A stretch of DNA of 64,000 nucleotides from Lepidodermella squamata (GCA_047495785.1 JBLDXI010000003.1:1798001-1862000); one strand, 5' to 3'. Positions 12,103-32,809 are shown, numbered from the stretch's first letter. Numbers and translations: made by a program. The notes: generated by a model not told the origin, from the sequence alone.

Positions 12103-15100
12103 ATGCTCCTAATCAATATTCTAATTCTGGCATTATACGCACACGTGAAGTGGCCTTTCGCCGAGGCATGCGCCTCTAGTAGCATCTCTAACGATGCAAA
12201 TACAGCTGTGCGCCGTATGGTAAATATCCGAAGCTCTTCATGCGAATTAAAAAAAACATTTGACTTCAAGTACGTTCAATGCTATGCTAACGGTGTCGGA
12301 ACTTGCCGACAAGATAGTTGCCAATCAGGCGAAACTGCTGTAACTGGCTATGGAACGCTACATTTTTGCAAACCAAAAATCTTCTTTTCGGTTTCAGATA
12401 TCAGACAAATTTTCAGATCAAGCTGTATGCCAAAAGTTCATTCAGGTATCTGACTCATCCCGTTTTTAAGATTTTTGAGCCGTGAACACTTTGCAGAGTT
12501 ACGCGATTTGTGTGTATGGCAATGACACATTAACATGCGTACCTGCTGTTCCTGGCTGCTCGGGGACATTTCGTTTCGCCGCTCAGGTAACCATGGAAGA
12601 TTCACATTTAAGTTTAGTGTCATATCTGATATTAATGGCACAGTATGGCGCGTCAATTTACGACTCAATGGACAGATGCATCACGTCCATGAATACAATG
12701 ACAAGGGCAATGACTACAATAGCGACGGTGACGGCGCCAGCGACGGCGACAGTTGTTACAGTAAAGGACTTTCAACGGATGTCAATCAGTTTCATGGTTC
12801 GAATTTCAGGCGACGGGAAAATGGCTCCGATGTTCAGATGGTGTCAATCCATTTTGCCGTACAAATCAGTGTCGAGCTGGTGAATTCAGAGTGAGTTTTA
12901 CCAGCATAAAAAGCATATATAATGCTGCTAGTCAGAATGAATACCAATGTATATTTCATCAATAGACAAATAATAACTATATCATCTTAAGGAATTGTGA
13001 ATTGTTAATGCGTGTTCGCGTTCAATCATTCATAATAAGTGCTCTGTTGTGAGGTTTTCTCGGCCTCGGTAAAACATGCAGAATTTTTTTTAAATAAATT
13101 TACATTTCGCTGAACAGCTCAGCTTCACTTCAGCCGTCACCTACGATTCCGAAGGCGCATGTTCCTCCTCATTATACGTAAGTGTGTTTTTACATATCGT
13201 TGAATTACTCGGATTTAGGCATGCTTACGTCAGTTTCAAGACGGGTGACTGAAGCGGTGGATGAAGGGGCGAAACCATAGGGCGAAACGAATGACTTTTT
13301 ACTCGTCATCTTTCATCCTGAAAGTTACGTAAGCATGCCTTAATTTAAGTCATTACGACCCGAGCTTTATATCTTCTTGTGCTCACAAGTTTTTTTACTA
13401 CATTTGCTAGAGCTGTCAACCTGATGTTTGCTAGTCAACGATAGAGCATCTTCAAACTTCAAATTAGATAGTGATTGTTTTAATAAGTACATCGCTTTTT
13501 ATGCGTGAAATGTGGGTAAAGGGGGCAAGGGTGAATGTGGGATCTTGACTTTAATCATGTCATTTTCCGTCGCTTGAAAGACATTTTCAGAGGATATTCA
13601 GCAGCTTTGATGGAATTCGCGACTTTGCTTGAGGTTGTGCAGCTGGCGACGTAGAAGACTGAGGTGACCCAATCCGCCGTTTTAAAGACATTTTGCTACG
13701 GGGCGAAGAAAAGCCCCTGTTGCCATGCGTTGGCTTTGGCCCACGAGCTAAGATTAAAGATTGGTCGCCATCGATCCGCGGCATCATTCTGTTCCGCTAG
13801 CGGTTATAGGACAATGTCCCAAGCCCGGTCGCCGCCGAGGACTGGTTGGAGCTTTGGACTATGAGACATCGAACAGGCAGGGACAACTAGGCCTTTTGAG
13901 TAACCTGAGTTCGGCTAAAAAGGCAGCTCTATTCGAGGAGGTAATTGTGGGTAAAAAGTAATACAAGCATGCGAAGCACGGGCGGTGTCGAAATCGCGGA
14001 ACAGTTCCTATTGTTCCTATTGGTCATGTGACCCGAAGCTAACTGGCTTATTGTTCCGTGTTCCGTCATCGAGAAGACACAATTGGAGGAAAAATATATT
14101 GAGGGTGGAGAATAAGTAATTTCGCATGAAAAGAGATAGGTATTTTTCTCATTCCGATAGATTCCGACGGTAGAAGATATTTTGTTCCGCGTAATAGAGA
14201 CATTGTTCCGATGTAAGCAACTACGGCCCATTTTGACCTACTTTCACTTGAGCAGTTCTCGTTCCTAATTTAATTTCTCTAAGGGATTTTTATTCTCGAC
14301 TGTTCGGAGAAACTGTAGAATTTCAAGGCTATACCATGCGTCACACACCACGCGAGTCAGCCGTATATATCTGTTACTTTGTAATGATTGTTAATTCGTC
14401 CTGTAGATCCTGCCTTAATTTCCAGCCCTGACTTTTAATTGGGTGCGGCCTAATTATTCGGGAAATACAGTAAACCAACGAAACTATCGATGTGCTTACT
14501 TTTTGGATTTGTTGATAGGTTGCGGTTGCATGTTACAAGCCGTCTTCCAATTGGCCGTTTTTCAGCTTTGTTCCTGGTTACGATCACACATCCCCTGCCG
14601 GTTGCAAAAGTGAACAAATACAGATCAACTTTGGGGTAAGATTCTTGCAGTCAGGTTTATTTTCGACATCTGTAACAGGCCTAGTCATCTTAGCCACGCA
14701 AAATTATAATTTCGTTATTGCGGCCCGGTTGTGCAGATACGGACGGGTTAGATTTCATCAAACGATTTCCCGTGTTTTAATCTACTAAGTTTCGTCTAAT
14801 GTAATGCAAAACTGAGTGCGCAGTGGCATTTCGAAAATTAGAAAATTTGCATGCTATGGCTAAATTAGACGTCGCTGACTTCAACCTACCATGTATTGGC
14901 GGACCACACTAATAACCCCTTATATCCTAACCACGGATGCCATCGAAGTGTTCCACTTGAATGCCAAGTATAGCAATGCGTGGCACATCTAATGAGACTA
15001 ATTATGACGAAAATTGCATTCCATCTTAATAGTAGCCTGATTTAAATAGAGCGGTCAGCTAAATCAGGGTCCAGAGTTCCAAAAACCCTGTGGCTATGTT

Positions 15101-18100
15101 GAACTCGGCGGACCCAATTTAGCGGACTAAATCAATTTGTAGTACTTGACTGTTTGGAACTGCCTGAGTGAGGCTTATGATCTCAGGTGTGTATAGTAGG
15201 TCATTAGATGGCCCTTTTAGTAGGAATCTAGCAACCACATGGCACACCTCCAGTCTAGTCCGAAACACTGGTCCGCTAATATGTTGTCGATATATATGTC
15301 ACGAATAGCCCCAAACCTGACCGAATAGTCTTATCCACGGGCTATTCCGGGAATCCGGGTGCCATTCGAATCAGGACCATTGGAAACGTGGAAAAAAGCA
15401 AAAAAACCAGGGGGTCATTTGTTGACGCCAACCGAGTAACCCCAAATGACGGTATTAGTGGGAAGATTTGGGGTACGAGATACGAGACCCATCTTTCGTG
15501 GGAAACTTGAGGGAACTTTACGTGGGAAAGCGAGAAAATGTTTGGGAAGTTTGGGATTTTTAACGCTGAAAATCAAGCCAAAAATGGTATTTTCCGGCTA
15601 TCGAATTATACGACTGGTGTCACAATTCTTGGGAATAGTTTTCTAATGTATACAATTAAGGGGGATGTTTCCCATATAATAATGGGGAAAGTGATAAAGC
15701 TAACGTTAGAGCCCTGGGAAATAATCCAGAACAAATTCGGAATCAGCGCAAAATTTGGGCTGGAGTGCAAATTTTCAATAGCGCGATACACGCATTCAAA
15801 AAACAAAACTACATACATGTTTACTTGTTCAGCGAATAGTGGGAAATTTTCAGAAATATTTGCACTGATGGTGGGAAGAAAAACACCTTTTCCAGCCATG
15901 ATCAGATCCAATATCCAATGCTCTGATACGGGCTAATAAACTGTGATATCACCATAGATCGCTTCGACTTACTTCTATTCGCAATACGCCGACATCGAAA
16001 ACGTGTTGATACAAGACAATGGCTACGCATACAACCTTCTGTACAAAGCAGATAACCTTAATACAGTGAGTTACGAGCCTGATTTCTGAAAAGTCGATCG
16101 TTAAAAACCCGAACAGCTCAAATACAAGAGGTGCGGCCGCAGTAACAGTTTGATTTGCAGACCAGTGGCAGTAGGTTGTTATAATCCGAATCCGGCGAAT
16201 CAAGAGGAAATTTTGGTAATATCATAATCAAAATTGTTCCTGCCCAGTTGGTTATTTTTTGCCTAGACGGAAAAAGTGATTCTGCCCGATGTTTCTGCCC
16301 GCTGTTTCTGCCCGCTCAAACGATTAGGGTGGATTTTTTATTTTCGAAAATCAATTAATGCTCTCGAAAATTCGGGAAAACCTCTCACCTGAAATAATGT
16401 TGCACAACTTCAATTTCCGTTCCCAGTCCCTTTACTACAACCTTCAGACTCTGACCAAACGAGTGAACAAGTGAATAACCTTTATTAGAATGTTTAAACT
16501 TTAAAACAAGTGTTTGGGCCGGATTAATTGTTAATAACGACGGAGCAATTCGAGAAATTGAAGATCGGCATGGGTTTAGCTTGCTTTACGGGTGGCTCAT
16601 CGCGCGGGTCATTTTCGACGTTTCGAAGCAGCAGCGTTTGCGAGAAATGCGACTCGGCCACCACCAATCCTTCGGTTGGCTTGATCTCTTGTGCAGACAC
16701 ACCCGAAACTGCAGCTGATTGTCCATCACCGAAACCGACAGCCAGTTTGTCGCTGATACTTCGTCGTTCAGAGGTGTTGAGTTTGTGGTAACTGTTCAGA
16801 GAATCGACCGATGCATGACCAGTAATCTGGATGATCTTTCGAGAATCGACACCGAGTTCAGAGAGGGTTGAGACGAGAAACTTTCGAGCCGAGTGGTTCG
16901 TGATTCGTTTGGTAATACCAGCACCGACAGCGGCGTCCTTGAGGAGCGATCCAAGGGGGTTCTTGCCCAAATTTTGGCATTTGTAGAAGAGGCCGTCGGG
17001 TCGAAATCGGGTCAGGCAACCAACATACATTGGGTCACTCGGGCGCGAAAACTTTCCCGGTCGTTTTGCACAAAAAATAAGGAACAATCGAACCGGGCAG
17101 AAAAAGCCACCGTTCTCGTATGCTCGTGGTGCCAGTTTTGAGTGGGTTGATTCGCCATTCCTGGTTTTAGTCTGTCGCTCGTTGAATTCGAGATACCTGC
17201 GACCTCCAGATTCGGTTTTTAGCTGGACATCACCAAACCTGAAAACGGCCAATTTAACAATTTTTCAATGGCAATCCAACAACCTACTTCATTTGTAGAT
17301 GTTCATCACGGCCACGAAGACCGAAATACACGGTGAAAACCAGCCACAGCATCGTGATCAAACCGATTGGCGTGTCATCAGTCAGCGTTTTCGCCTCACG
17401 CATTTTATCAATATCTTCTCGTTCTAGGCATTCAGATGCTCGGGCTTTATTTCCCTTTCCAGCACGCTTAGATTCGACAAACTTGGATTTCAGCATTTTC
17501 ATGCTATAGAAGAAATCGACTCTCGCCATGGTGAAGTTGATTTCGTTCTTCGTCACATCGCGGAGATGGCGAATGATGGAGGAATAAATGCCTCGAATCG
17601 TTGTCGGCTCCATCGCGCTACCATCAGTCTTCGTCAACTGCTTGAGAAAAAGAGCGACATAGAGATCCATATCCTTGACCGTAAGTTCAACTAATAGTTG
17701 CTCCGAAATGTGGAATCGCTGCTCGACAAATGCGACAAATCGGCTCCAGTGGTTTGTTTTGTTTCCAGTGTTGCGAAATCTGGTTTTCTGAGCTGTGCCG
17801 TTTGCTTCAAAACCAGCCACGAAATTTTCGACTTCTTGAATGAACTCCGACGTATCACCCTCTTCATCGGATTCTTCTTCTTCGATATCAGCATCAAGTT
17901 CTCGTTCGAGAAGTCGAATTGGATCGGATTCTTCGCGCTGTTTCACTTCCACGGAGCCGTCAGCGAGAGCACCGAGGCCCAGGTCGCCAATATCAAAAGT
18001 GATCTCCATTGAAAATTCGACGGAAATTCGCAATATTCAATTGATAATAAAACAAGGAAATGAACAACGAACAAAAAAATTCAAAAAAAAAATTTGCTAC

Positions 18101-19329
18101 AAATTTTAAGCTGGATTTCTTATTTTCGTTATTAACAACGGTCATCTTTCATACGCACTATACACCATTCCCCATTTTCACTCGTCCGAGTGTCTGATTA
18201 ACGAAAATAACCAACTGGGAAGGAACAGGAACTCTTCCCTTGTGTCTCGGGCAAAACCTCGAATTCAGCCCTTGAAAATACCCTCGGGCTTCGCTTCGCT
18301 GCGCTCCGCTACGCCCTCGGGCATTTTCAGCGGGGAGAATTCTCGGTTCTGCCCTCAACACCGGGAAGAATTCCTTAATTCCGAGTGATCTCAAGCTTGA
18401 ATTGGCAGGTGTCATCCACCGCTAGCCAACTATTCACTTTCAGCGAGTGCATTAACTATGTAAATTTGAACATCAGCTCGGCACGCTTGCTGGATGTTAG
18501 ATTCATTGTTTATTTCTGCGCAGAGCAAATATATCAGTTATTATTACTTGCGAAGTACTTCACCTTCTGCCTTCATTTCATGCCAGATGGATTATGTTAC
18601 ACAATTAGACAATACTTTCATCCAGGTAATAAGCTAGTGCTCATTTATTAAGACTTATATAACCCGTTTCAGCTGGCAACATACGACAGCCAGAGCGATT
18701 GTTTCTCCAACGCCCAAAATGTGGTTTTGTGACTAAAATATTTAAAAATCCTCTTGTAACTGAAATATTTCAGAAAAAGTATACCGGCTTTGTCAGATGT
18801 TTGACCAATTCTCAATATTCCTCGTCGGGCCCTCGAGCTATAACTTGCCGTCCTGTTGAGATCGTTGGCACGGCATGCACCAGTTATGATTTGACCACCC
18901 AATCAGTGAGTTTCAAATTAATCTATGAAGATAATCCTTAGCGCACTCGGATGAAACCGGTGGAAATACCTTTCAGGAAGGTGGGCCCTACCCGACAGTA
19001 TATGAGTGTCTCAGCGCCAATGTTGGACTCGGCCCTGTATGATTTACCAGGAATTTTCTAGCAAGAGGCTGTCAAATTCACTATGCTTTTTAGGCGAAGT
19101 GTTGCTGTGAACGTGGCGGAATTAAAACTTTAATAGGCACCATACAGAACGACACATCGATCACTTCTCACGGCCAATCTGCTTACTGTTCATGTCCAAC
19201 CGGAGCAACGGTAATAGGCTCAACATTGTGTTTGACTATAATATGAATAATTCTCTAATTTCCAATCTGAAGCGACACATCTACGACGAATACTACAGCA
19301 ACGCTGAAACTTCAACTCAATGCGGATGA
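12103..19329 (+). CDS. Secreted modular Cys-rich protein, all-phase-0 17-exon family, copy 1 (~490 aa)
   Basis: Hand-spliced from signal peptide MLLINILILALYAHVKWPFAEA through 17 exons bounded by AG/GT with no stops, ending RHIYDEYYSNAETSTQCG*. Exon-by-exon homology to copies 2 and 3. Confidence 0.85.
13197..13360. mobile_element. MITE-like foldback element, degenerate copy (in intron 7 of copy 1)
   Basis: CGTTGAATTACTCGGATTTAGGCATGCTTACGT is partly mirrored by ACGTAAGCATGCCTTAAT. Same terminus as the element at 20420. Confidence 0.6.
16240..18385 (-). mobile_element. Crypton-like tyrosine-recombinase DNA transposon inserted in intron 10 of copy 1 (boundaries approximate)
   Basis: The equivalent intron is ~55 nt in copies 2 and 3 but ~2.2 kb here. 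Contains a YR gene and a long subterminal hairpin. Confidence 0.8.
16524..18009 (-). CDS. Tyrosine recombinase, DUF3504/CryptonA-type (exons 18009-17288, 17238-16524)
   Basis: A 49-nt GT-AG intron gives ..FGLRGRDEHLQMK-FGDVQL... Catalytic set R (GLRG), K (QTKT), HxxR (TNHSAR), H (TGHAS) and Y (LNSYH) all present. Confidence 0.88.
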
Positions 19330-20419
19330 GCAGGCAACCACAGATTCTTCGCTTAGAATTAAATGAGCAGGACCAGTCATTCTTGAAACTTGAAAGTGGG
19401 GTCCGGGCAATTTTGAAAAGGGTTGCGGAAGGTTTTGGGGTCGTGGGGTCGCGAGAGTCGTGACAAGAAACACTCAAAGCCCACTTTTAACGCATTTTTA
19501 GCCTATTTTCAGAAAGAAGAAAGATTTCGTCAGCTAAAGCTCGCTTCGCTCGCAAAGGTTAATTAATTCACGGGTTTGAAGTTTGGAGGCCAAATATTAA
19601 TTGGCCAAAATATTACATAAAATTTCTTTCACGTTTTGACGTTTTGAGAGTGGTCGGTCGCGACTTCAGTTGAATGACCAATCAGGGTTCGCGTAATAAT
19701 TCAGTCAGTTACAAGCGGCCGGTTTAGGGTTCAAGAGGCAATGCGGCCGGAAAGGTCGCCAGCCAGCCGCCATTTTTGACCGAGAGCGAAAATAGTTAGA
19801 GAACCACTGGCTTGACGTATTTCGGAGTAATTCGAGTAATGCTTGATATGTAACTCGATTGGCTTGATTCGTATACGACAAAACCTGACCCACTATTCAA
19901 GTTTGGGCATTTGGGATGGGGATTGGGATGGCATTTCACTATTTTTGCGCTAACTTCCTAATGAAATACTACGTCAAGAGCAAAATGCCACGGACTAATA
20001 GTTATCAAAGAAAACAATCATGCGCAGAAGTATAATTTACAAAGCGCATCCACTTGGTCATTTTGGCTGGAATCTTATCTGTAATTAGGGCTATCAGGAA
20101 TGCTTACGGCACTTCAAACCGATCTATTGGCGAGAATGCAAAATAATTCTCAGAGTTTCAGAGTAAGTGAAGGCAAAAAAGTGGCGCCTACTTCAAGATG
20201 AGTTACGGGTAGATCTCTGAAGCAACTGGAGCGATTTGTTCTGCTTGGCAAGCGCAGCTTTTTAGAGACAAATCTGATCTGCTCTGGGGTTTAAATTTAA
20301 CACTTAATGAGCTTAATTAGTCTCCAATAGATGTAGACATTCTTCGTTTTGAAATGGAAGAAAACAGCCAAACCAAAGCAGTCAAAGCAGGATGCATCGC
20401 CTCACTACTCCGTAGTTGT

Positions 20420-20590
20420 GAGCGCCGTTGAATAACTCGGATTCAGGCTTGTTCACGTCAGTTACAGACAGTTGATGGGTGACAAGTTCCCCTCATTCAC
20501 ATAAAAACGCTCCAATTACCTTTCACTTGTCACTATTCATCTTGTAACTGACATATAAAAGCCCAAACCCGAGTTATTCAACGACGCTTA
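20420..20590. mobile_element. MITE-like element, ~170 bp, with long terminal inverted repeats
   Basis: AGCGCCGTTGAATAACTCGGATTCAGGCTT..GTCAGTTAC mirrors GTAACTGAC..AAGCCCAAACCCGAGTTATTCAACGACGCT. Related copies at 13197, 42541 and 58338. Confidence 0.75.
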
Positions 20591-21793
20591 CGCTCCCATT
20601 TCTGTGGCTTGTTAATTTAGTTATCGTTATAGTTACATAGTTAGCTAGATACCCAATGGAGTATCGCCGTCATCTTTTCTTGAAAATTGTTACTCCGGTT
20701 AAAAGTGATACACTTTCAGAAAACTTTAAATATCGCTTGTTTCCTAATTGCGACACTTCAAAGATTATCCGCTAACTTCCAGGGACGAGATCTACTTTCA
20801 ACAAAATTAAGTGTTCACAAATGTCATTTATAATTTTTCGTAGAAATCAGATTAACTTTCTATTTAGAATGGGTCATTTCAAAAATAGTTGGTAATGATT
20901 CATTAACATCTTATTGCAATATCTCCGAAGCTATTAAAGTAGAAATAGGGCATCCTACATCCTATTAGCTGCTGTATTAAATGTTAAATTCTGCATTGTT
21001 GATAGGATTATTTTACTTCAACTTGTACTCGAAGTCTCCTCTTCAGTTATAGCTGATTGGATATTGGAAATTGATTTGGAAGCGAAACTGGAAAATTGGC
21101 GAAATTCCGGTAAAAGGTCGTTACTCTACTATTGCTGAGTGCTGGCTATTTCGATATATTCAATCTGTTATCACCATATTTGTTGGAACAAAGTTTCATG
21201 AATTATTCTCATGGTTTCATTTCCTTTGTTCATTTTCGAGTATCTCGCTGCGTTGAAAATAAAGATGCACGGCAACGGGTTACGGCAGTTCGTTTTTGCT
21301 ACCTGTAAAATCTTAAATCGAAGAATTCCAGATTCCAGAAGAGCAGGAGAAAACTTTGAAAAGTCATAGAAAAGATAAGCGAAGAAGCAGAATTTCTCTA
21401 TTCTCTTCAAGCGCAAGAGCGCAAGAGCGCAAGATAGCAATCGCAGCTAATGGCAATTTTATAGCCCTTGAACCGAAAGTAGTAATTTGGGATGCAACCG
21501 CTCCGCAGTTGTAAACAACCGCCATATAGCAGTATAATTATATATAGAAATATACGCTAGCACTGGCGGTCCCTTACGTCGCAACACGAACGATATGTAC
21601 GTATCAAACGATGACTGATGATCTTCGATTGAATTCCGTAAACATGTGTCTATGTTGAATTCATTCCACTTAGAATTTGGGAAGTTAGTAAATCAAAATT
21701 ATGCACAAACATATGTGAATCGTTATCGTTTCTGTAGTTACGACATACCATCGCTCACGAATATGATTTTCAAGCAGAGCAGAGCTTTAAAAG

Positions 21794-23336
<1,543 letters not shown>

Positions 23337-23821
23337 AATGTAGTTTCTTTCGGAAAAGAATAAAAGATGAAGTTTAGAACGAATTAATCCGCGTATATCT
23401 CCTGCTATTAATCGGCTGTTGATTCTTAGTGGGCCTGGGCTGGGTTAGCCCTTATTTAGCCTCATGCAGGTCAGCAGGTTAGTTTTATATAAGGACAAGC
23501 CTTGTGTGGGCCCACGGCATACGGCATACGGCATACGTACTTGGCTATAATAACATGACGTTTGTAGCTGTGATAGTCAAAGCTGAAACCGGATGTTTTG
23601 CATTAAGCATTATGTGTTGTAAGCTAAGCCATGGGTCTGTTGCTTAATACTTACGTTGAGATGAGGCATTTTATTAAGAACATTGCCACGAATTACGTGC
23701 CAAGATAATCTTGATAGCGTGAAGTGAAACAGCAGTACACTTAAATGCTTGTTTCAACGGACGCGCATAATCAAACAATTTTCAAGAGAAATATCGTCAT
23801 TATATGTTTATCTAAGCTGAA

Positions 23822-26800
23822 ATGCACCTTCTCCTGGTCAATTTTCTATTCTTGGCATCATACACATACGCGAGGTGGCCGGTCGTGAAGGCATGTTCCC
23901 CTAGTAGCTCATACGATACAAATACAGCCCCAGTTGTGCGCCGTATGGTAAGTACCTGAAGCCCTATCAGCGATTAATAAAATAACAGTGACTTTAAGTT
24001 CATTCAATGCTATGCAAACGGGGTTGGAACTTGCCGACAGGATAGTTGCCAGTCAGGCGAAACTGCTGTACTTTTTTGGATTCACAATACTCTAAAAGCA
24101 AGAACGTTCTCCGGTTTTAGATATCCGACAAATTTTCCGATCAGACCGTTTGCCAGAAGTTCACTCAGGTACCTATTTGATTCATGGTTTTGAGACTTTC
24201 GAGCCGTAGACCCTTGGCAGAGTTACGTTATTTGTGTCTATGGCAATGACACCTTAACATGTGTACCTGCTATTCCTGGATGTTCGGGGTTATTGCGTTA
24301 CTCCTCTCAGGTTACCTTTACAATATACGTGTAACTTTCTTCAACTGACGTTGATGGAACAGTATAGCGCGTCGGTTTACGAATCGATAGAGAGGTGCCT
24401 TTCATCTGCGAGTACAAAGACAACAACGGCAAAGACAGCTTCAGCTGCAGCAACAACGACGTTGGCAACGCTTGCCACGGTGAGAATCTTTCTCAATGAC
24501 GTTTGTCATGTGAGTAAATTCGAATCTCAGCAGACAGGAAAATGGATCAGATGCTCCGACGGTTCCACTCCATTTTGCCGTGTAAATCAATGTAGTGCTG
24601 GTGAATTCAGGGTGAGTTCGAAGTAAAAAGCAATGTAAAATTACAATCAGTATCACAGTACAATCAGTTTCTCGTATTAAAAATTTTTAAGATTGAATAT
24701 GCCAATGAATTTTTATTGGCATGAAAGTATCAAAGTAGCAATGAGAAAAGTCCATCATTTAGTTCAACATTCGCTTTGATCGATTTCTATTTTAAAAATT
24801 GCTGAAAATGTGTTTCATGAATTGATTCCCATTCCACTGAACAGGCCAGCTTTACATCAGCCGTCAACTACGATTCGGAAAACGCATGTTCCTCCTCATT
24901 ATACGTAAGTAACTTAAGTAACTTTAGATGTAATTATCTCTCTTAGGCTTTCTAGATTTTAGCTTCGAACCTACTTTTCAAGCAATTTTGAAATTTGTTG
25001 ATAGGTTGCGGTGACATGTTACCAGCCGACAGCGGATATAGATTATCAACTTTTCATCATCGTTCCTGGTTACGATCACATAGCGCCTGCTGGGTGCAAA
25101 AGTGGGCAAGTAAAGATCAACTCCGGGGTAAGAATCGTATTCTGCAGTTGGGCTCAACTTATTTTGCGACAAAAGACACTGTATGACGCTCCTTGTATAG
25201 AGAATTGGCGTTTTAGGTCAAAACAGCGAAAAAGTGACTGAATCGCCCGCGAGTTGGCGAGCTTTCCGTGAATTTTCGACCTGGAAGGGCATAATACATT
25301 GTTTGATTGAGGCTAAAAAACGATACAGCAATTTGCAAGATGCAAGCTTTGAAAAAACTCCACAATTAAAACTCTGGAATAGGCTGTGAATTCCCGCGCG
25401 ATTGTAATAGAAAAGGCGCAAGAGATATGTGCCTAGTAATCGAGATTTCGTATTTGCGTTTGGGTAAGCGAAGGCACGCTTGGGTATAAGGTATAAGGAA
25501 CTTCTAGTATGCTCACCGTGAAGATTTTCTTCGCTGTTATGAGTAACCATCATTTCGAGCTGAATTGGTCGCATCTCACCTATCACATAGATTATTTTTT
25601 TACGAAACGATTAAATGGGGCGATGCATCGTTCGACTTCAACGACTTCCCCTTTTCCAAGATGTATTAATTTCACAATTTCGCTGGTTACGTAACATTTG
25701 TGACGTCATTAAAAAAAGTTCCCGTGGAAGCTAAAATCGATCAATTTAGCACATTTTTGATCAGCTGTCGGCATACACCTGTTACGTTCACCAGCAAGAT
25801 AATTATTTGTAAGAGTTACTTGGTTAATAGAGTTAATAGATGATCATTTCCTGTAATTTTCGACTCGAACCGATAATTGGTAATTACGTAAGCTCAATTT
25901 AAATAATGCAGCGATATTTGTCCCTGTTGCCCGACAGTTGCCATCTAACTTCCACGTTCTGCCTCGAACTCGGCGATCAAGGTGACTATTTCGCCCTTTT
26001 TCAAATCGCTTTTTCAAATGATTAAGTATTCCAATATCTTAAATCATTGATTGATTGTTTGTTGTTCGTTAATGAAAAAAACGCGTCACCGATAGATAAT
26101 TTATCTGTTTTTTTTACCGTCGCCGACAGAGGAGAATCAGTAATTTTCATTTTTATTTTGCTTCACGTGTATTTTACCTGGGCTAGGTTCACAAAATCTT
26201 TTACCCAATGACTAGTGAGTAGTTATAATGTGATAAATCCATCTTATGGGTGCTAATAAGTCGTTCATCTCATTTTCTCATTTTTACCCAAATGGTCCTC
26301 ATTGCAGCAATTTTCGCAGCAAGAACCTGTGAGTTCTAGCACAAGAAGAACTATTTGTCTTCGCAGATTGGTTTGTTTGATGATATTTATACACTCATAA
26401 CATCAAAAAGCGTTGGGGTTCACTCCCAGCGGCTCGGAAGAATCTAATTCGCATCATTAGCTAAGAAGCGCCACCATAGATGATGAAGGCCACCCGCTGA
26501 ATTGATATGTCAATGATTAAATGATGATTTTCCCCTTATATTCCACTCTGCTTGTCCAATCATATTCGCAAATACTTATTCGTTCGGCTTTAAGGAAAAG
26601 CAATGAAATTATCACTACAAAGCTCGAGGACACTATTTTTGACTAAAGTTTTTGACAATCAAAAGATGGTTTACAAGCATCTTTTGCAGTATGGTAGCTT
26701 TGAAGGCTTGGCTAATTGAGCGTTTTATTTTTCTCGGCAACAGCGTTAGGCAGGTCGATTTCCTGGCATTTTAGATCATTGAAGCTCTTGAAGAAGTTCC

Positions 26801-28611
26801 CTGAACAGCCCCACGATTTTTCTTTTGTAGAAGCTTCTAGTGACCGATCAATCGCCCGAACGATTATTCTTCGACTTGCCGGACCCAAAAAGAGCGATTT
26901 TCAAAATAGCGCCATGATTAAAATCCGATGCGATTGACAAAAAATTGCGCAAATAACTACTGTCATGATGTGGGCCAGTTGGGAGTACTAATTAATTCAT
27001 TCATTTAGATCTATTCATTCCACAGAAGTGGGCAATGGCCGATTAAATCAGAAATCAAATGTAAATCAAATCAGATATAACTCTCTGATATGTCTCTGAA
27101 CCTCTAAAGGATGATTCCACTTCCGCCATAGATTGCTTCAACCTACCTATATTCGCAATATGCCGACATTGATAAGCTGATCACAATAACCTATGGCTAT
27201 TACCCACAGAAAATTCTTTCCTACGCAGACCTGAATACGGTGAGTTCATAATATCATTTCCTTATTCATTCAGTAAAAGTCTATCGGAAACAACTCGAAC
27301 AGATGAAATACAAGATATGCATCCGCAGCAACTCACCTGTTTGCAGACCCGTGGCATTGGGTTGTTATAATCCAAATCCGGACAATTCGGAAGTTTTGGT
27401 AATAGCAGCTTGAAATTAGCTTGAAATGTGTAAATTCAAATATGCATTGGCAGTTGGCATCCACCGCTAGTCAAACATTCACCTACAAAGAGTGCACTGA
27501 ATATCAGGTAAATTTGATCATTATTTCAGCGAGTCGAACTAAATTCTCCGGGTTTTTTCGTTATTAATTTGAAATATCCTGAAATAACCCTGATCGATGT
27601 CTGAAAAAAACGTCAAAAATACTCAAAATAGCCAGAAAGCGAGCTAATAAGGCTTCCGACGTCTAAGTTCAGAGCGTTGTTTGAGAGTTTTTTGTTATTT
27701 TGCAAGGATTTTCACTGACTTTGTCACGGATATTTGGGATATTTCAAAGTAATGGCCTTATCACGCGGAGGAATTTGTTTTCTGGAAGCCTCATTTTCTA
27801 TTCATTCACAGAGAAAATTCATCAGCTATTATGACACGGCTGTAACGTCACCGTTGACAACTGATACCACCAAGTGTCAGACCGAATATGTCACTCAATT
27901 GGGCAGTAGTTTCATCAAGGTAATACATATGTCTGGGAAAATGGGATGAAAATAACTTGGCTAAAACGTTTCAGCTGGCATCATACGATAGCCTTGAAGA
28001 TTGTTCCACCAATGTCCAAAATGTGGTTTTTCTAAATTAATAACTGATGATCTCTTGAAGCACTGGATTATTTTAGAAAAAATATACTGGCTTTGTCAGA
28101 TGTTTGACTCAAACCCGATTTGTTCATTGGATAAGTCTTCAAGCTATTGTTTACCGTCCTGTCGAGATCGTTGGCAATACTTGCACCAGTTCAGACTTGA
28201 GCAACCAACCTGTGAGTTTCAAAATACTTGGCGTACACAGGTATAACTGTTTTAAATACCTTTCAGGAAGGCCCCTACGCGACACAATATGACTGTCTTA
28301 GCGCTAATGTTGGAACCGGCCCTGTAAGACTTTACCATAATTTCACAGCAAGATGCTGGCACTATTTTTCAGGCGAAGTTTTGCTGTGAAAGTGCAGGAT
28401 TGAAAACTCTAATAGGCACTATCCAAAACGACATATCGATAACTTCCCGTGGCCAAAGTGCTTACTGTTCTTGCCCAAGCGGAACTACGGTAATAGGCTC
28501 AAAAATATAATAGCATATTTTCATATTTTTTCGGTAATTTTCATTCTGAAGCGATACGTCTACGACGAATACTACAGCTCAACTGACACTTCCAATGCTT
28601 TCTGCGCATGA
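23822..28611 (+). CDS. Secreted modular Cys-rich protein, all-phase-0 17-exon family, copy 2
   Basis: MHLLLVNFLFLASYTYARWPVVKACSPSS... 17 exons, all GT-AG and open, ending RYVYDEYYSSTDTSNAFCA*. Confidence 0.85.
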
Positions 28612-28914
28612 GCAGCCAATCCCTGATTTCTGTGTTCAGTAGCGGATGCGCGTGGAAGTAGAGTTATGCTCGAGAATCAACACAATTTGAATTCTCATTC
28701 ATTCGGATGTCGACTGATGAATAAATTCCCCTTTTCAAGTGGAGCATTTGTTAAAAACTAATACGCACCTAATACGCATGTGACTCGTTTCCGCTTTTAG
28801 TGATTATGAAAACATGGCAAACTTGAAAATATCCTCTGATAATTAACGATAACAAGATTCCTGCGGAGGTGAAAACATCGTACTCGATTAGGAATCGATA
28901 GCTTTATTCAAATC

Positions 28915-28980
28915 AAGTCAGGCCTTGCCAGCCAATCCAAAGTCGATATTTGCCTCCATAGTGAGATCAGCTACAGCAGA
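28915..28980 (+). pseudogene. Small remnant of the ABCC 3' end
   Basis: TCAGGCCTTGCCAGCCAATCCAAAGTCGATATTTGCCTCCATAGTGAGATCAGCTACAGCA matches 11446-11506. Confidence 0.75.
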
Positions 28981-29615
28981 TCAGAAATCTGGCTGTTGAC
29001 AGTTTAGATATTATTTAGTTTCGACACGAATGAAATTAAAGGGAAGTGAAAAGAATGCGAAGAATTGATTAATTGATTTCTGGACCTGTTCTGGACCGGA
29101 AAAGAGCGAACTAGGACCGCGGATCTGGTGGGGATCACAAACATCGACATAAGGGTCCTCCCTTTGGTCTTTGAACGAGCCTACCGTACAGACTGATGGA
29201 ACATGGAACCCTTGGACTTTAATTCGAATTATGTGGAAGAACGAAGGAAAGTGGTCGTGAAACGTTAATAAATTAATTTCTGTATCTGTTGCTCATATTG
29301 CGAAAAGGCGGTCAAATTTGCAATGAAAACCGGATGTTAATTCACAATTCACATTATTACGCATCCTCATGTAGCGGGTTCGTGACTCTTATTTTGTAAC
29401 TAATGCATGCGAGAGTGTCATAGTTTCGCTAGTACGCAAACGGAAAGAGAAAAACACTTCTATAGGATGACGTAAATGACTTAAATTGCTGTTGCACGTG
29501 TTTCAAGCCACGGTACAATTAGAATGATGTACAAATTTCGACTTGTTCACGTATGCATCGCTGCTATATTTCCTATATAATTTCTGAAAAAAACTCTCGA
29601 TTGCTGAAAATTGAA

Positions 29616-32600
29616 ATGCATGTGCTGATTCTTCTAATGGCAATGTTCGGATACTTGAATCGGCTGTTCGTGGAGGCATGCTCCCCAAGTAGCATCTCTG
29701 CCGATGGAAATACAGCCCCAGCTGCGCGTCGTATGGTAGGTTTCTGAAGCTCTCTAAGCGAATATTTAAAAAAAAATCGTTAACTTCAAGTATCTTCAAT
29801 GCTATACTAACGGCGTTGGAACTTGTCGACAAGACACCTGCCAATCAGGCGAAACCGCTGTAATTTTCAGGAATTTCGGATGCTTGCGGAGCACGAATTT
29901 TCTTCGGTTTTCTAGATATCCGACAAGTTCTCCGATCAAACCGTTTGCCAGAAGTTCACTCAGGTATCTGACCCCTGACACTCATGGCTTTGTGATCGTT
30001 GAGTTGTGGTAAATTTACAGCGTTACGTGATTTGCGTACATGGGAATGACACTTTATCATGCGTATCCGCTATTCCTGGCTGTACGGGGGTGTTACGCTT
30101 TGTCTCACAGGTCGCCATCAGCCATTTACTTTTTTACCTTTCTTGGCCTAACTGCTTGTTACGGAACAGTACGGCGCGTCAATCTACGATTCAATAGACA
30201 AATGCATCACTTCCATGAATACAATGACGACAACTATAGCTACAGTAACAATAGTTCCAACAGATTTTCAATTATCGTCATATGTGAATTTCAGCCGTCA
30301 GGAAAGTGGATTCGATGCTCAGATGGTGCTAGTCCATTTTGCCGGGCAAATCAATGTCGTGCCGGTGAATCAAGAGTGAGTTTCGAAAGCAGAACTAACC
30401 AATGTGAAGTTGCTCATATTCGTTATGCTCATTAATATTAGCGCCTTGCTCATTCTGATTTCTTCATAAAGTCCATTACAGTGGCTTTGTCTTATCTCAG
30501 AGAAAAGTATTCTATACTATACCAATTACGATTCTGCCTTCGATCACAAGAGAAGATCTTTCTGTTCAGAGTCAGAAGTATCTGAAATTACGCCTTTCAA
30601 GATGAGACCACGCTGCAGCTATTGCGAAAATGTCTTGGTATTTAGGTAATCGAATGTCTATTTCAATGAACAGCTCAGCTTTACAGCAGCCGTCAACTAC
30701 GATTCCGAAACCGCATGTTCCTCCTCATTATACGTAAGAAATATTTTTGACAAATGATTAGCATATTTGAAGACAATCGAATTCGAGACTCATCAGTAGG
30801 ATGAGTTCGCTTCACAATTTTATATTTTATGACCGATAATTTTAGCTTGAAAGCGATACAAAGGCCGGGCTAAGCCAACGGCCAACGTGAATACCGAATC
30901 AGTACACTGTCCCGTACATTTTTTTACCCGAAATTTCACTCATTTAATCCGATCTCGCCCCAATTTCGTATTATTTTTTGAACACCTGAAACATCGAAAA
31001 TAGCTTGATATAAGCCAGTGTCAGATTGTGACTTTTTGCTGGGAGGGGGATTGTCATTATTGTCGTATTATTTGGCATGACCCAATAGCTATAAGAGAAA
31101 TACGGTAAACTGTAACTAACGAAACTAATCTGTCTGGTAACTTTTTGAATCTGTCGATAGGTTGCGGTGACCTGTTACAAGCCAACATCTGATAATTGGC
31201 CGTATTTCAGCTTCGTTGCTGGTTACGATCACACAGCCCCTGCTGGATGCAAAAGTGGACAAACACAAATTAATTATGGGGTGAGTTAACATTTTCGGCT
31301 TTGAAGCTAAGCTGTGTCTCACTAGAATGCAGAAACTCAATCGAAATCATTAATTGTCTCATTTTTACCGGAGTAATGTATCGATCTAATCAAATCATCG
31401 ACACCGATAAATCACGTTAAATCGCGGGAAACGGGAAATCGGAAGTCTGAGGGTTTTGCATGTTCAAGAAATATATATTGAAGCGCGAATTCGAAGCTGT
31501 TGAACCTTTCCAAACCAAATCAAATAGAAGAATCAAGTGATCTATTCCAAAGATTTGGCTCTAATGTTATGTACTAGAAAACAATGTTTCCTTCATACTT
31601 TAAGATTGCTTCTACTTACTTATATTCACAATACGCCGACATCGAAAACATGCTCTCAGCACAATATGGCAGCACAGATCAGCTTCTGTACAATCTGAAT
31701 ACGGTAAGTTGCAATTCGAATCTCGCTATTTGCTCAACAAATCCCATCGTCATCAGGTCAAATTCAAACGATGCTCCCGCAGCAACTCTTTGGTTTGCAG
31801 ACCCTCGGAATTGGGCTGCTATAATCCAAATCCAGCGAATCAGGAGGAAGTTTTGGTAATGTCAGATTCAAAACGGTAGCTAGCAATTTTGAGCATGCTT
31901 TGGCAGTTGCCATCCACAGCCAGCCAAACATTCACTTACTTCGATTGCAATGGCGCTTCGGTAAATTTGAAAACTAGCACGGCACATCCGCTACATTCGT
32001 TTTAATCTCTGTAAAGGGCAAATGTATCAGCTTTTATGACGTGGAAAGTACGGCACCGGTGTCATCTAATGCCGCCATTATTTGTCGGATGGACTTTTAC
32101 ACATCCAGTAATTTCGTTCAGGTAATACGCTTTTGCGAATGTAATGATGATAATTTATGTAATTAATTCCAGCTGGCAATATACGATAGCGTCAGAGATT
32201 GTGACTCCAACGTTGGAAATGTGGTTTTTTGAAACAAAAATTAGCCGCTTCTCAAACAATCGGATTTTTTCAGAAAAAGTATACCAGCTTTATCAGATGT
32301 CTGACTAAGTCTCTAATGTCATGGACGAACCTCCGAGCTATCACTTGCCGTCCCGTTGAGATAGTTGGCATGACATGCACTAGTTTTGACGTGAGCACCC
32401 AGCCGGTGAGATATACAATTGTTCGCGAGAAAAACCGTTGAGAATACTTTTCAGGAGGGAGGGCCCTACTCAACAGAATATGAATGCCTCAGCGCCAATG
32501 TTGGACTCGGCCCTGTAAGATTATCCCTTAACTTGATAGCAAGATACGGGCAACTTCACTGCTTTTTAGGCGAAGTGTTGCTGTGAACGTAGCGGAAGTA

Positions 32601-32809
32601 GAACACTGATAGGCACCCTCCAAAACGACGTAACGTTAACTGCACGTGGCCAAACTGCTTACTGTTCTTGCCCAAGTGGAGCTACGGTAACATCTCCAGC
32701 ATTCAAATATGATATTTATTTTTATATAATTTTCATCTGACTGATAACTCAGCGATTCGTCTACGACGAATACTACAGCGCCTCTGACGCATCAACTCAA
32801 TGCTCATGA
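29616..32809 (+). CDS. Secreted modular Cys-rich protein, all-phase-0 17-exon family, copy 3 (~477 aa)
   Basis: MHVLILLMAMFGYLNRLFVEACSPSS... 17 exons, all GT-AG and open, ending RFVYDEYYSASDASTQCS*. Confidence 0.85.

Follow-up and report, generated by a model that had tools for sequence, protein, structure and literature searches.

Why should three neighbouring genes, each broken into 17 short exons, carry every one of their introns between codons? The question is raised by a window of 64,000 nt (the whole stretch of DNA analysed here, GCA_047495785.1 JBLDXI010000003.1:1798001-1862000) from Lepidodermella squamata, animal-like nuclear DNA with a G+C content of ~42%, in which three plus-strand regions, called A, B and C below, align with one another across exons and introns at ~74-77% DNA identity. 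The original prediction, made from the window itself, read these regions as paralogs of a secreted protein family and, by likeness to the micro-exon genes (MEGs) of schistosomes, proposed that their symmetric exons could be skipped in frame; it added the caveat that internal duplication of one phase-0 module would leave the same pattern. The caveat is close to the answer that we favour: A-C are likely to be functional genes of a superfamily that is restricted to the lineage and has expanded in tandem, each encoding a secreted module-string protein of ~50 kDa, with cassette duplication giving the uniform phase and with the transcripts being constitutively spliced.

Gene models were built from the three-way alignment, using blocks that are flanked by conserved AG and GT and are open in one frame in all copies. 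Gene A occupies 12103-19329 (491 aa), gene B 23822-28611 (499 aa) and gene C, the most compact of the copies, 29616-32809 (478 aa), all on the plus strand, with starts and stops exactly where they had been predicted. Each gene has 17 exons; in each, 16 of 16 introns are GT..AG and in phase 0, no internal stop is present, and the length of every exon is a multiple of 3, i.e. all exons are symmetric. The exons span 16-45 codons (48-135 nt, with a median of 81, and 81 bp in gene C), which upholds the predicted exon number and lower bound and moves the upper bound from 44 to 45 codons (exon 14 of gene B). The phase-0, 17-exon observation is thus confirmed in every checkable detail. It extends to two further paralogs, D and E, described below: across the five fully modelled genes (A-E), 82 out of 82 introns are in phase 0, and the exon boundaries are retained in paralogs that have only ~50% of residues in common.

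The pattern of cysteines gives a first view of how such a gene may have been put together. The numbers of conserved cysteines per exon are 1, 3, 1, 3, 1, 3, 1, 2, 0, 3, 1, 1, 1, 3, 1, 5 and 1 (31 in total), and two exon types alternate: even exons with three cysteines in the pattern [KR]-[YWF]-[IV]-x-C-x7-8-C-x4-6-C, and odd exons with one cysteine in the pattern Y-[DE]-S-x3-C. We compared the two-exon modules with each other by profile-profile alignment (hhalign, five paralogs per module, 432 column-shuffled controls). M2 and M2b matched with an E-value of 4e-14, the pairs M2-M5, M1-M3, M5-M7, M2b-M5 and M2-M6 all scored above every one of the 432 controls, and M1 to M7 form a single connected set. 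A four-exon super-repeat (exons 6-9, 10-13 and 14-17), which the cysteine pattern had prompted us to consider, was rejected: its alignment stops after the first exon. Every cassette is interrupted by one phase-0 intron and bounded by others of the same phase, at equivalent positions, and paralogs differ in how many copies of the unit they have (17- versus 19-exon genes, and the amplified cassettes of loci L014-L017 below). The caveat about an internally duplicated phase-0 module is therefore borne out, in that the cassettes are mutually homologous and the paralogs differ by whole two-exon cassettes.

We propose that the gene would have been built by serial tandem duplication of a founding two-exon cassette, in which one "3-Cys" exon and one "1-Cys" exon together encoded one small disulfide-bonded module. 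If both founding introns lay between codons, every descendant intron would inherit phase 0, and the all-symmetric exon pattern would be a record of the gene's construction. This also affects how chance should be reckoned. With a phase-0 frequency of ~46% of introns (the human figure, PMC3632108), the naive probability of 16 independent phase-0 introns is 0.46^16 (p ~4e-6), a value that does not apply here because the 16 introns would descend from the two introns of the founding cassette and are not independent. At the DNA level, the same symmetry leaves room for gain, loss, fusion and recombination of cassettes, and examples of each are seen among the paralogs. As for the transcripts, the most likely mode of splicing is a constitutive one, in which the introns of ~50 nt are recognised by intron definition.

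To place A-C within a larger family, the whole 121-Mb assembly was searched exon by exon. Exons 14, 16 and 6 matched 8, 7 and 12 loci, respectively, and there were 23 matches of exon 8 and 26 of exon 4, nearly all of them at 1.25-1.83 Mb of C3, the contig to which the window belongs. Away from this contig we found the canonical copy D on contig C9 and one marginal exon-4 match on contig C17 (E 0.03). Three lineage-marker families (Taeniidae_ag, Col_cuticle_N and Chitin_bind_4) gave no match, and neither did the controls. The family has at least 10 canonical members, which are clustered, plus relatives with amplified cassettes and relatives with a different C-terminal part. Paralog D is intact (17 exons, 486 aa), as is paralog E (19 exons, 564 aa, with one extra two-exon cassette), and all introns of both are in phase 0. 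The extra cassette (4b+5b) is found in paralogs E-H, which form a cluster 308 kb upstream, and adds exactly 4 cysteines; in L017, 4b-like exons occur at least 4 times. The distant relatives L014 (G000:C3:1255000-1264900), L015 (C3:1270000-1279900) and L016 (C3:1532000-1540000) carry at least 7 tandem cassettes of 7-like and 8-like exons at a spacing of ~600 nt, the repeat consisting of a CRPD-type 3-Cys exon, a Y-D-S..C-N..L-Y exon and an exon-8-like C-Y-x-P...G-Y-D-H...C exon. Some units of L014-L016 have lost the internal intron, their last two exons being fused (e.g. L014:5285-5473). In L019-L022 (G000:C3:1303000-1312900 and 1366000-1397800, on both strands), exons 1-5b are in common with the canonical members and are followed by a different Cys-rich C-terminal region with conserved F-C-H-N-V-A-G and V-A-W-I-K-Y-E-V-I-P-Q motifs, for which no Pfam match was found; this arrangement represents mosaic recombination of cassettes between genes.

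The reading frames show clear signs of selection. Among A-D, the ratio of nonsynonymous to synonymous substitution rates (dN/dS, by the Nei-Gojobori method) is 0.28-0.38 at dS 0.56-1.05, and for A-D against the distant paralog E it is 0.18-0.19 at dS above 2. Mean pairwise identity is 0.74 in exons versus 0.59 in short introns. Because of the dN/dS of 0.28-0.38 and the better conservation of exons than of introns, A, B and C are, as far as their sequences tell, real coding genes under purifying selection. Constraint differs along the gene: exons 2, 3, 6 and 15 are strongly constrained, and exons 11, 13 and 17 evolve nearly neutrally (dN/dS 0.74-0.96). These figures bear on whether the loci could instead be decaying or unexpressed relics, whose reading frames are kept merely because the duplications are recent. 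For such relics one can cite a sequencing record of the loci that is genomic only, a transposon inserted in an intron of gene A, and the loss of two conserved cysteines from gene B. Against this, five of five modelled paralogs keep intact open reading frames (ORFs) and all of their splice sites despite dS values of 0.56-1.05 (A-D) and of more than 2 (versus E), and dN/dS stays at 0.18-0.38, which makes decay extremely improbable.

The exons of gene A lie at 12103-12219, 12271-12339, 12398-12445, 12497-12586, 12644-12760, 12810-12890, 13118-13177, 14519-14635, 15958-16065, 16117-16215, 18409-18459, 18524-18625, 18673-18723, 18774-18905, 18977-19036, 19094-19210 and 19273-19329 (plus strand), separated by introns of 51, 58, 51, 57, 49, 227, 1341, 1322, 51, 2193, 64, 47, 50, 71, 57 and 62 nt. 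Those of gene B (plus strand) are at 23822-23947, 23999-24067, 24121-24168, 24221-24310, 24363-24479, 24531-24611, 24845-24904, 25005-25127, 27132-27239, 27303-27398, 27454-27507, 27812-27919, 27975-28025, 28077-28211, 28267-28323, 28373-28489 and 28552-28611, and those of gene C (plus strand) at 29616-29735, 29791-29859, 29916-29963, 30021-30110, 30170-30244, 30295-30375, 30674-30733, 31161-31280, 31605-31703, 31757-31855, 31907-31960, 32017-32121, 32173-32223, 32274-32405, 32455-32514, 32570-32686 and 32753-32809. In A-D, 12-13 of the 16 introns of a gene measure 47-71 nt. Intron 10 of gene A owes its 2193 nt to a transposon inside it that is not part of the gene: two adjacent tyrosine-recombinase ORFs (16524-18033, minus strand) match Phage_integrase (E 2e-7) and DUF3504 in Pfam, a Crypton-like combination.

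Two other elements lie between the genes. The C-terminal half of an ABCC-type transporter (21809-23336, plus strand; ABC_membrane E 4e-19, Walker A motif GRTGAGKS) is found between A and B. Its intron at 22604-22668, the only intron of a neighbouring gene that was checked, is in phase 0; around 22995-23052 the expected stretch with the ABC signature motif seems to be missing, so this copy may be a pseudogene or may have a small exon outside the model. Between B and C, at about 29144-29175, contig depth rises roughly ten-fold (512 versus 49) and several contigs end, marking a dispersed repeat.

The encoded proteins look secreted, soluble and disulfide-rich. The N-termini of A-C are hydrophobic and have small residues at -3/-1, in line with the signal peptide of the original prediction, and cleavage is plausible ahead of a conserved cysteine (e.g. 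between FVEA and CSP). The mature proteins (~50 kDa, pI ~6) have no transmembrane-like segment (maximum Kyte-Doolittle value of 1.2 in a 19-residue window) and are rich in Ser, Thr, Ala, Tyr and Cys. In the protein alignment, exon 5 ends in a Thr/Ala-rich linker of variable length (plus strand; A 12680-12760, B 24399-24479, C 30206-30244), a low-complexity T/A/S stretch of 27 residues in A and B and 13 in C, which is likely an O-glycosylated spacer. The proteins also have an acidic Tyr-rich tail (Y-D-E-Y-Y). The modules would be held by disulfides; since the conserved count is odd (31), one cysteine may be left free for intermolecular bonding and may link the protein to others. Gene B alone replaces two otherwise invariant cysteines, by Tyr at 28152-28154 (exon 14) and by Phe at 28379-28381 (exon 16), a paired loss that suggests a disulfide spanning exons 14 and 16, albeit from one event only. 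Going by anatomy only, the product, in which the linker would be glycosylated and the Tyr-rich tail is acidic, is most plausibly an extracellular binding protein or a coat or matrix protein.

Does the module belong to a known family or fold? As queries we used the exons together with in-frame, stop-free read-through pieces (exons 1-2 and 4-5 of A, 5-6 of B, and 4-6 and 14-15 of D). Searching 18 exon and read-through pieces against Pfam with E-values up to 1-10 returned nothing relevant, including EGF, Sushi, TSP1, LDLa and ShK. A profile of the exon-8 module (30 sequences), with the signature A-x-P-C-Y-x-P...P-Y-[YF]-x-[IV]-x-P-G-Y-D-H...C-x-x-G, had no match among PDB sequences or in a word-indexed protein collection. 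With one part of the protein as query, a profile of exons 4-6 found no real match among 1.84 billion protein representatives, including the MEG families of platyhelminths. Its lone match, a public protein of 329 aa (P0001), is a perfect tandem-repeat ORF with a unit of ~57 aa, probably a translated satellite, that contains L-T-C-T-P-G-S-P-T-C-G-G by chance and is not a relative. AlphaFold gave an unusable model for exons 4-6 of D, with a predicted local distance difference test score (pLDDT) of 40, and one with a pLDDT of 65 for a fused cassette that lacks its intron, given an alignment of 30 rows. In both, the 1-Cys exon is modelled as a helix and the Cys-rich exon as a beta-hairpin, and neither model matches a known fold, Foldseek against the PDB and the Atlas fold and shape search having returned nothing for the fused cassette. 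In sum, the profile hidden Markov model, database and structure searches matched the queried exons and pieces to no described family, and our reading of the module is that of a small, hitherto unrecognised disulfide domain, new to the databases searched.

It may also be that the modules represent a described fold or family that has diverged too far for sequence methods, e.g. another small disulfide domain, or a beta-trefoil lectin-like fold with the modules grouped in threes. A lead to the latter came from an Atlas feature search queried with the exon 4-6 read-through, whose named top matches all belong to the beta-trefoil clan (RicinB_lectin_2, Fascin, FRG1, CDtoxinA and Inhibitor_I66; 0.85-0.87), and the 19-exon paralogs amount to 9 cassettes, i.e. 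3 x 3. These scores are, however, under the tool's own reliability line (recognition 1639 versus 2300, with ~64 shared features), a second Atlas query with another cassette gave nothing, so that the beta-trefoil lead was not reproduced, no match came from Pfam, the PDB profile search or the fold searches, A-D carry 8 cassettes rather than 9, and the alignments contain no QxW-type motif. We regard a diverged known fold as doubtful, and it would leave the exon-duplication account unchanged. That account, with the lineage-restricted family that goes with it, has its own difficulties. The last module (M8, exons 16+17) joins the others weakly (p ~0.03), and the older cassettes are alike mainly in their 3-Cys exons. 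As structural unit, even+odd, odd+even and a larger one of 3-4 exons are all conceivable. The AlphaFold models are poor to mediocre. The 1.84-billion collection does not return even this genome's own ORFs, and because the lineage is absent from that collection, having found no relatives is weak evidence about other taxa. Finally, the exon junctions are predicted from comparative evidence, and some alternative splicing may occur.

This brings us to the proposal that the symmetric exons serve splicing, with regulated or stochastic skipping of one or two of them at a time giving a combinatorial set of secreted variants that would act in recognition or adhesion or have a venom-like role. Schistosome MEGs, which inspired it, share several features with these genes: like MEGs, the genes here have a signal peptide and 10-20 symmetric exons, are hard to see in ORF maps, and belong to a clustered lineage-specific expansion. 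The symmetry of all exons, which stands, means that each skip would be in frame; the exons are short for an animal gene, and the family is expanded and secreted. In every paralog, exons 7 and 8 sit between longer introns (100-2004 nt). Exons 4 (GTCGCC, GTTACC, GTAACC) and 13 (GTTTT[TG]) are followed by conserved weak donors in each copy, those of gene C being GTCGCC and GTTTTT, and exons 11, 13 and 17 are under relaxed constraint. These three features would agree with a degree of alternative splicing. MEGs differ, however, in that tiny exons (6-81 bp, the majority 15 bp, as compared to 48-135 bp here) hold most of their coding sequence, and in having long introns (0.1-5 kb, as compared to mostly ~50 nt) and small, cysteine-poor secreted products (as compared to ~50 kDa with 31 conserved cysteines), along with documented splice variants. 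Accelerated evolution has been reported for MEGs (PMC4350168), whereas the overall dN/dS of ~0.3 here speaks for a conserved fold.

The probable mode of splicing argues against skipping as well. The exons that are skipped in eukaryotes at large are typically short, with long introns on both sides, which is the exon-definition mode (PMC6142364), but introns of ~50 nt point to intron definition, where skipping is uncommon. Nearly any single-exon skip would alter the cysteine parity, which is unchanged (still odd) only on loss of whole cassettes or of exons 8 and 9, and the paired cysteine loss in gene B hints at a disulfide between exons. No excess of retention-compatible introns was found: 6 of 61 short introns are in-frame and stop-free, which is about chance. 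The sole public sequencing run containing the locus is genomic DNA, with contigs continuous over the introns at a depth of 49; apparent joints in this run were merely one contig that matches paralog B too, not splice junctions. Diversity is visibly made at the DNA level instead, through many paralogs and variants in cassette number. A combinatorial exon-skipping repertoire is thus unsupported, with the anatomy against it, and we judge MEG-like diversification unlikely. Slightly less likely still is a bolder form of it, in which entire two-exon cassettes, or exons 7-9 between the longer introns, would be skipped in frame and the many secreted isoforms that result would add to the diversity of paralogs, i.e. 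a MEG- or Dscam-like repertoire in a free-living small invertebrate, of independent origin outside flatworms and arthropods and built on a new disulfide mini-domain.

Parallels exist in other systems as well. Repeat proteins that arose by tandem exon duplication have a uniform intron phase, e.g. the 54-bp phase-0 exons of fibrillar collagens and the repeat exons of nebulin and titin. As in these, the unit here would be one or a few exons with a single inherited phase, and its copy number varies among paralogs; the difference is that the unit here is a two-exon, 4-Cys putative disulfide module, extracellular and Cys-rich, and not a Gly-X-Y helix or an actin-binding repeat. Classical shuffled extracellular modules are overwhelmingly of phase class 1-1, with one exon per module. 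The modules here resemble EGF, Sushi/CCP, Ig and LDLa in being small, extracellular and apparently disulfide-bonded, in having symmetric introns, and in recombining between genes (as in L019-L022), but they are of class 0-0, have an extra phase-0 intron inside each module, and have no Pfam match.

If skipping of cassettes were true, it would represent an independent origin of splice-generated secreted diversity, which is speculation on present data. As it stands, the locus illustrates, cleanly and with good documentation, how introns come to be uniform in phase when an exon cassette is serially duplicated, and how uniform phase then permits modules to be gained, lost, fused and recombined within a rapidly expanding secreted superfamily. 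The small disulfide module is apparently abundant in this genome, and it is worth defining as a family because annotation based on ORFs and homology would otherwise miss it.

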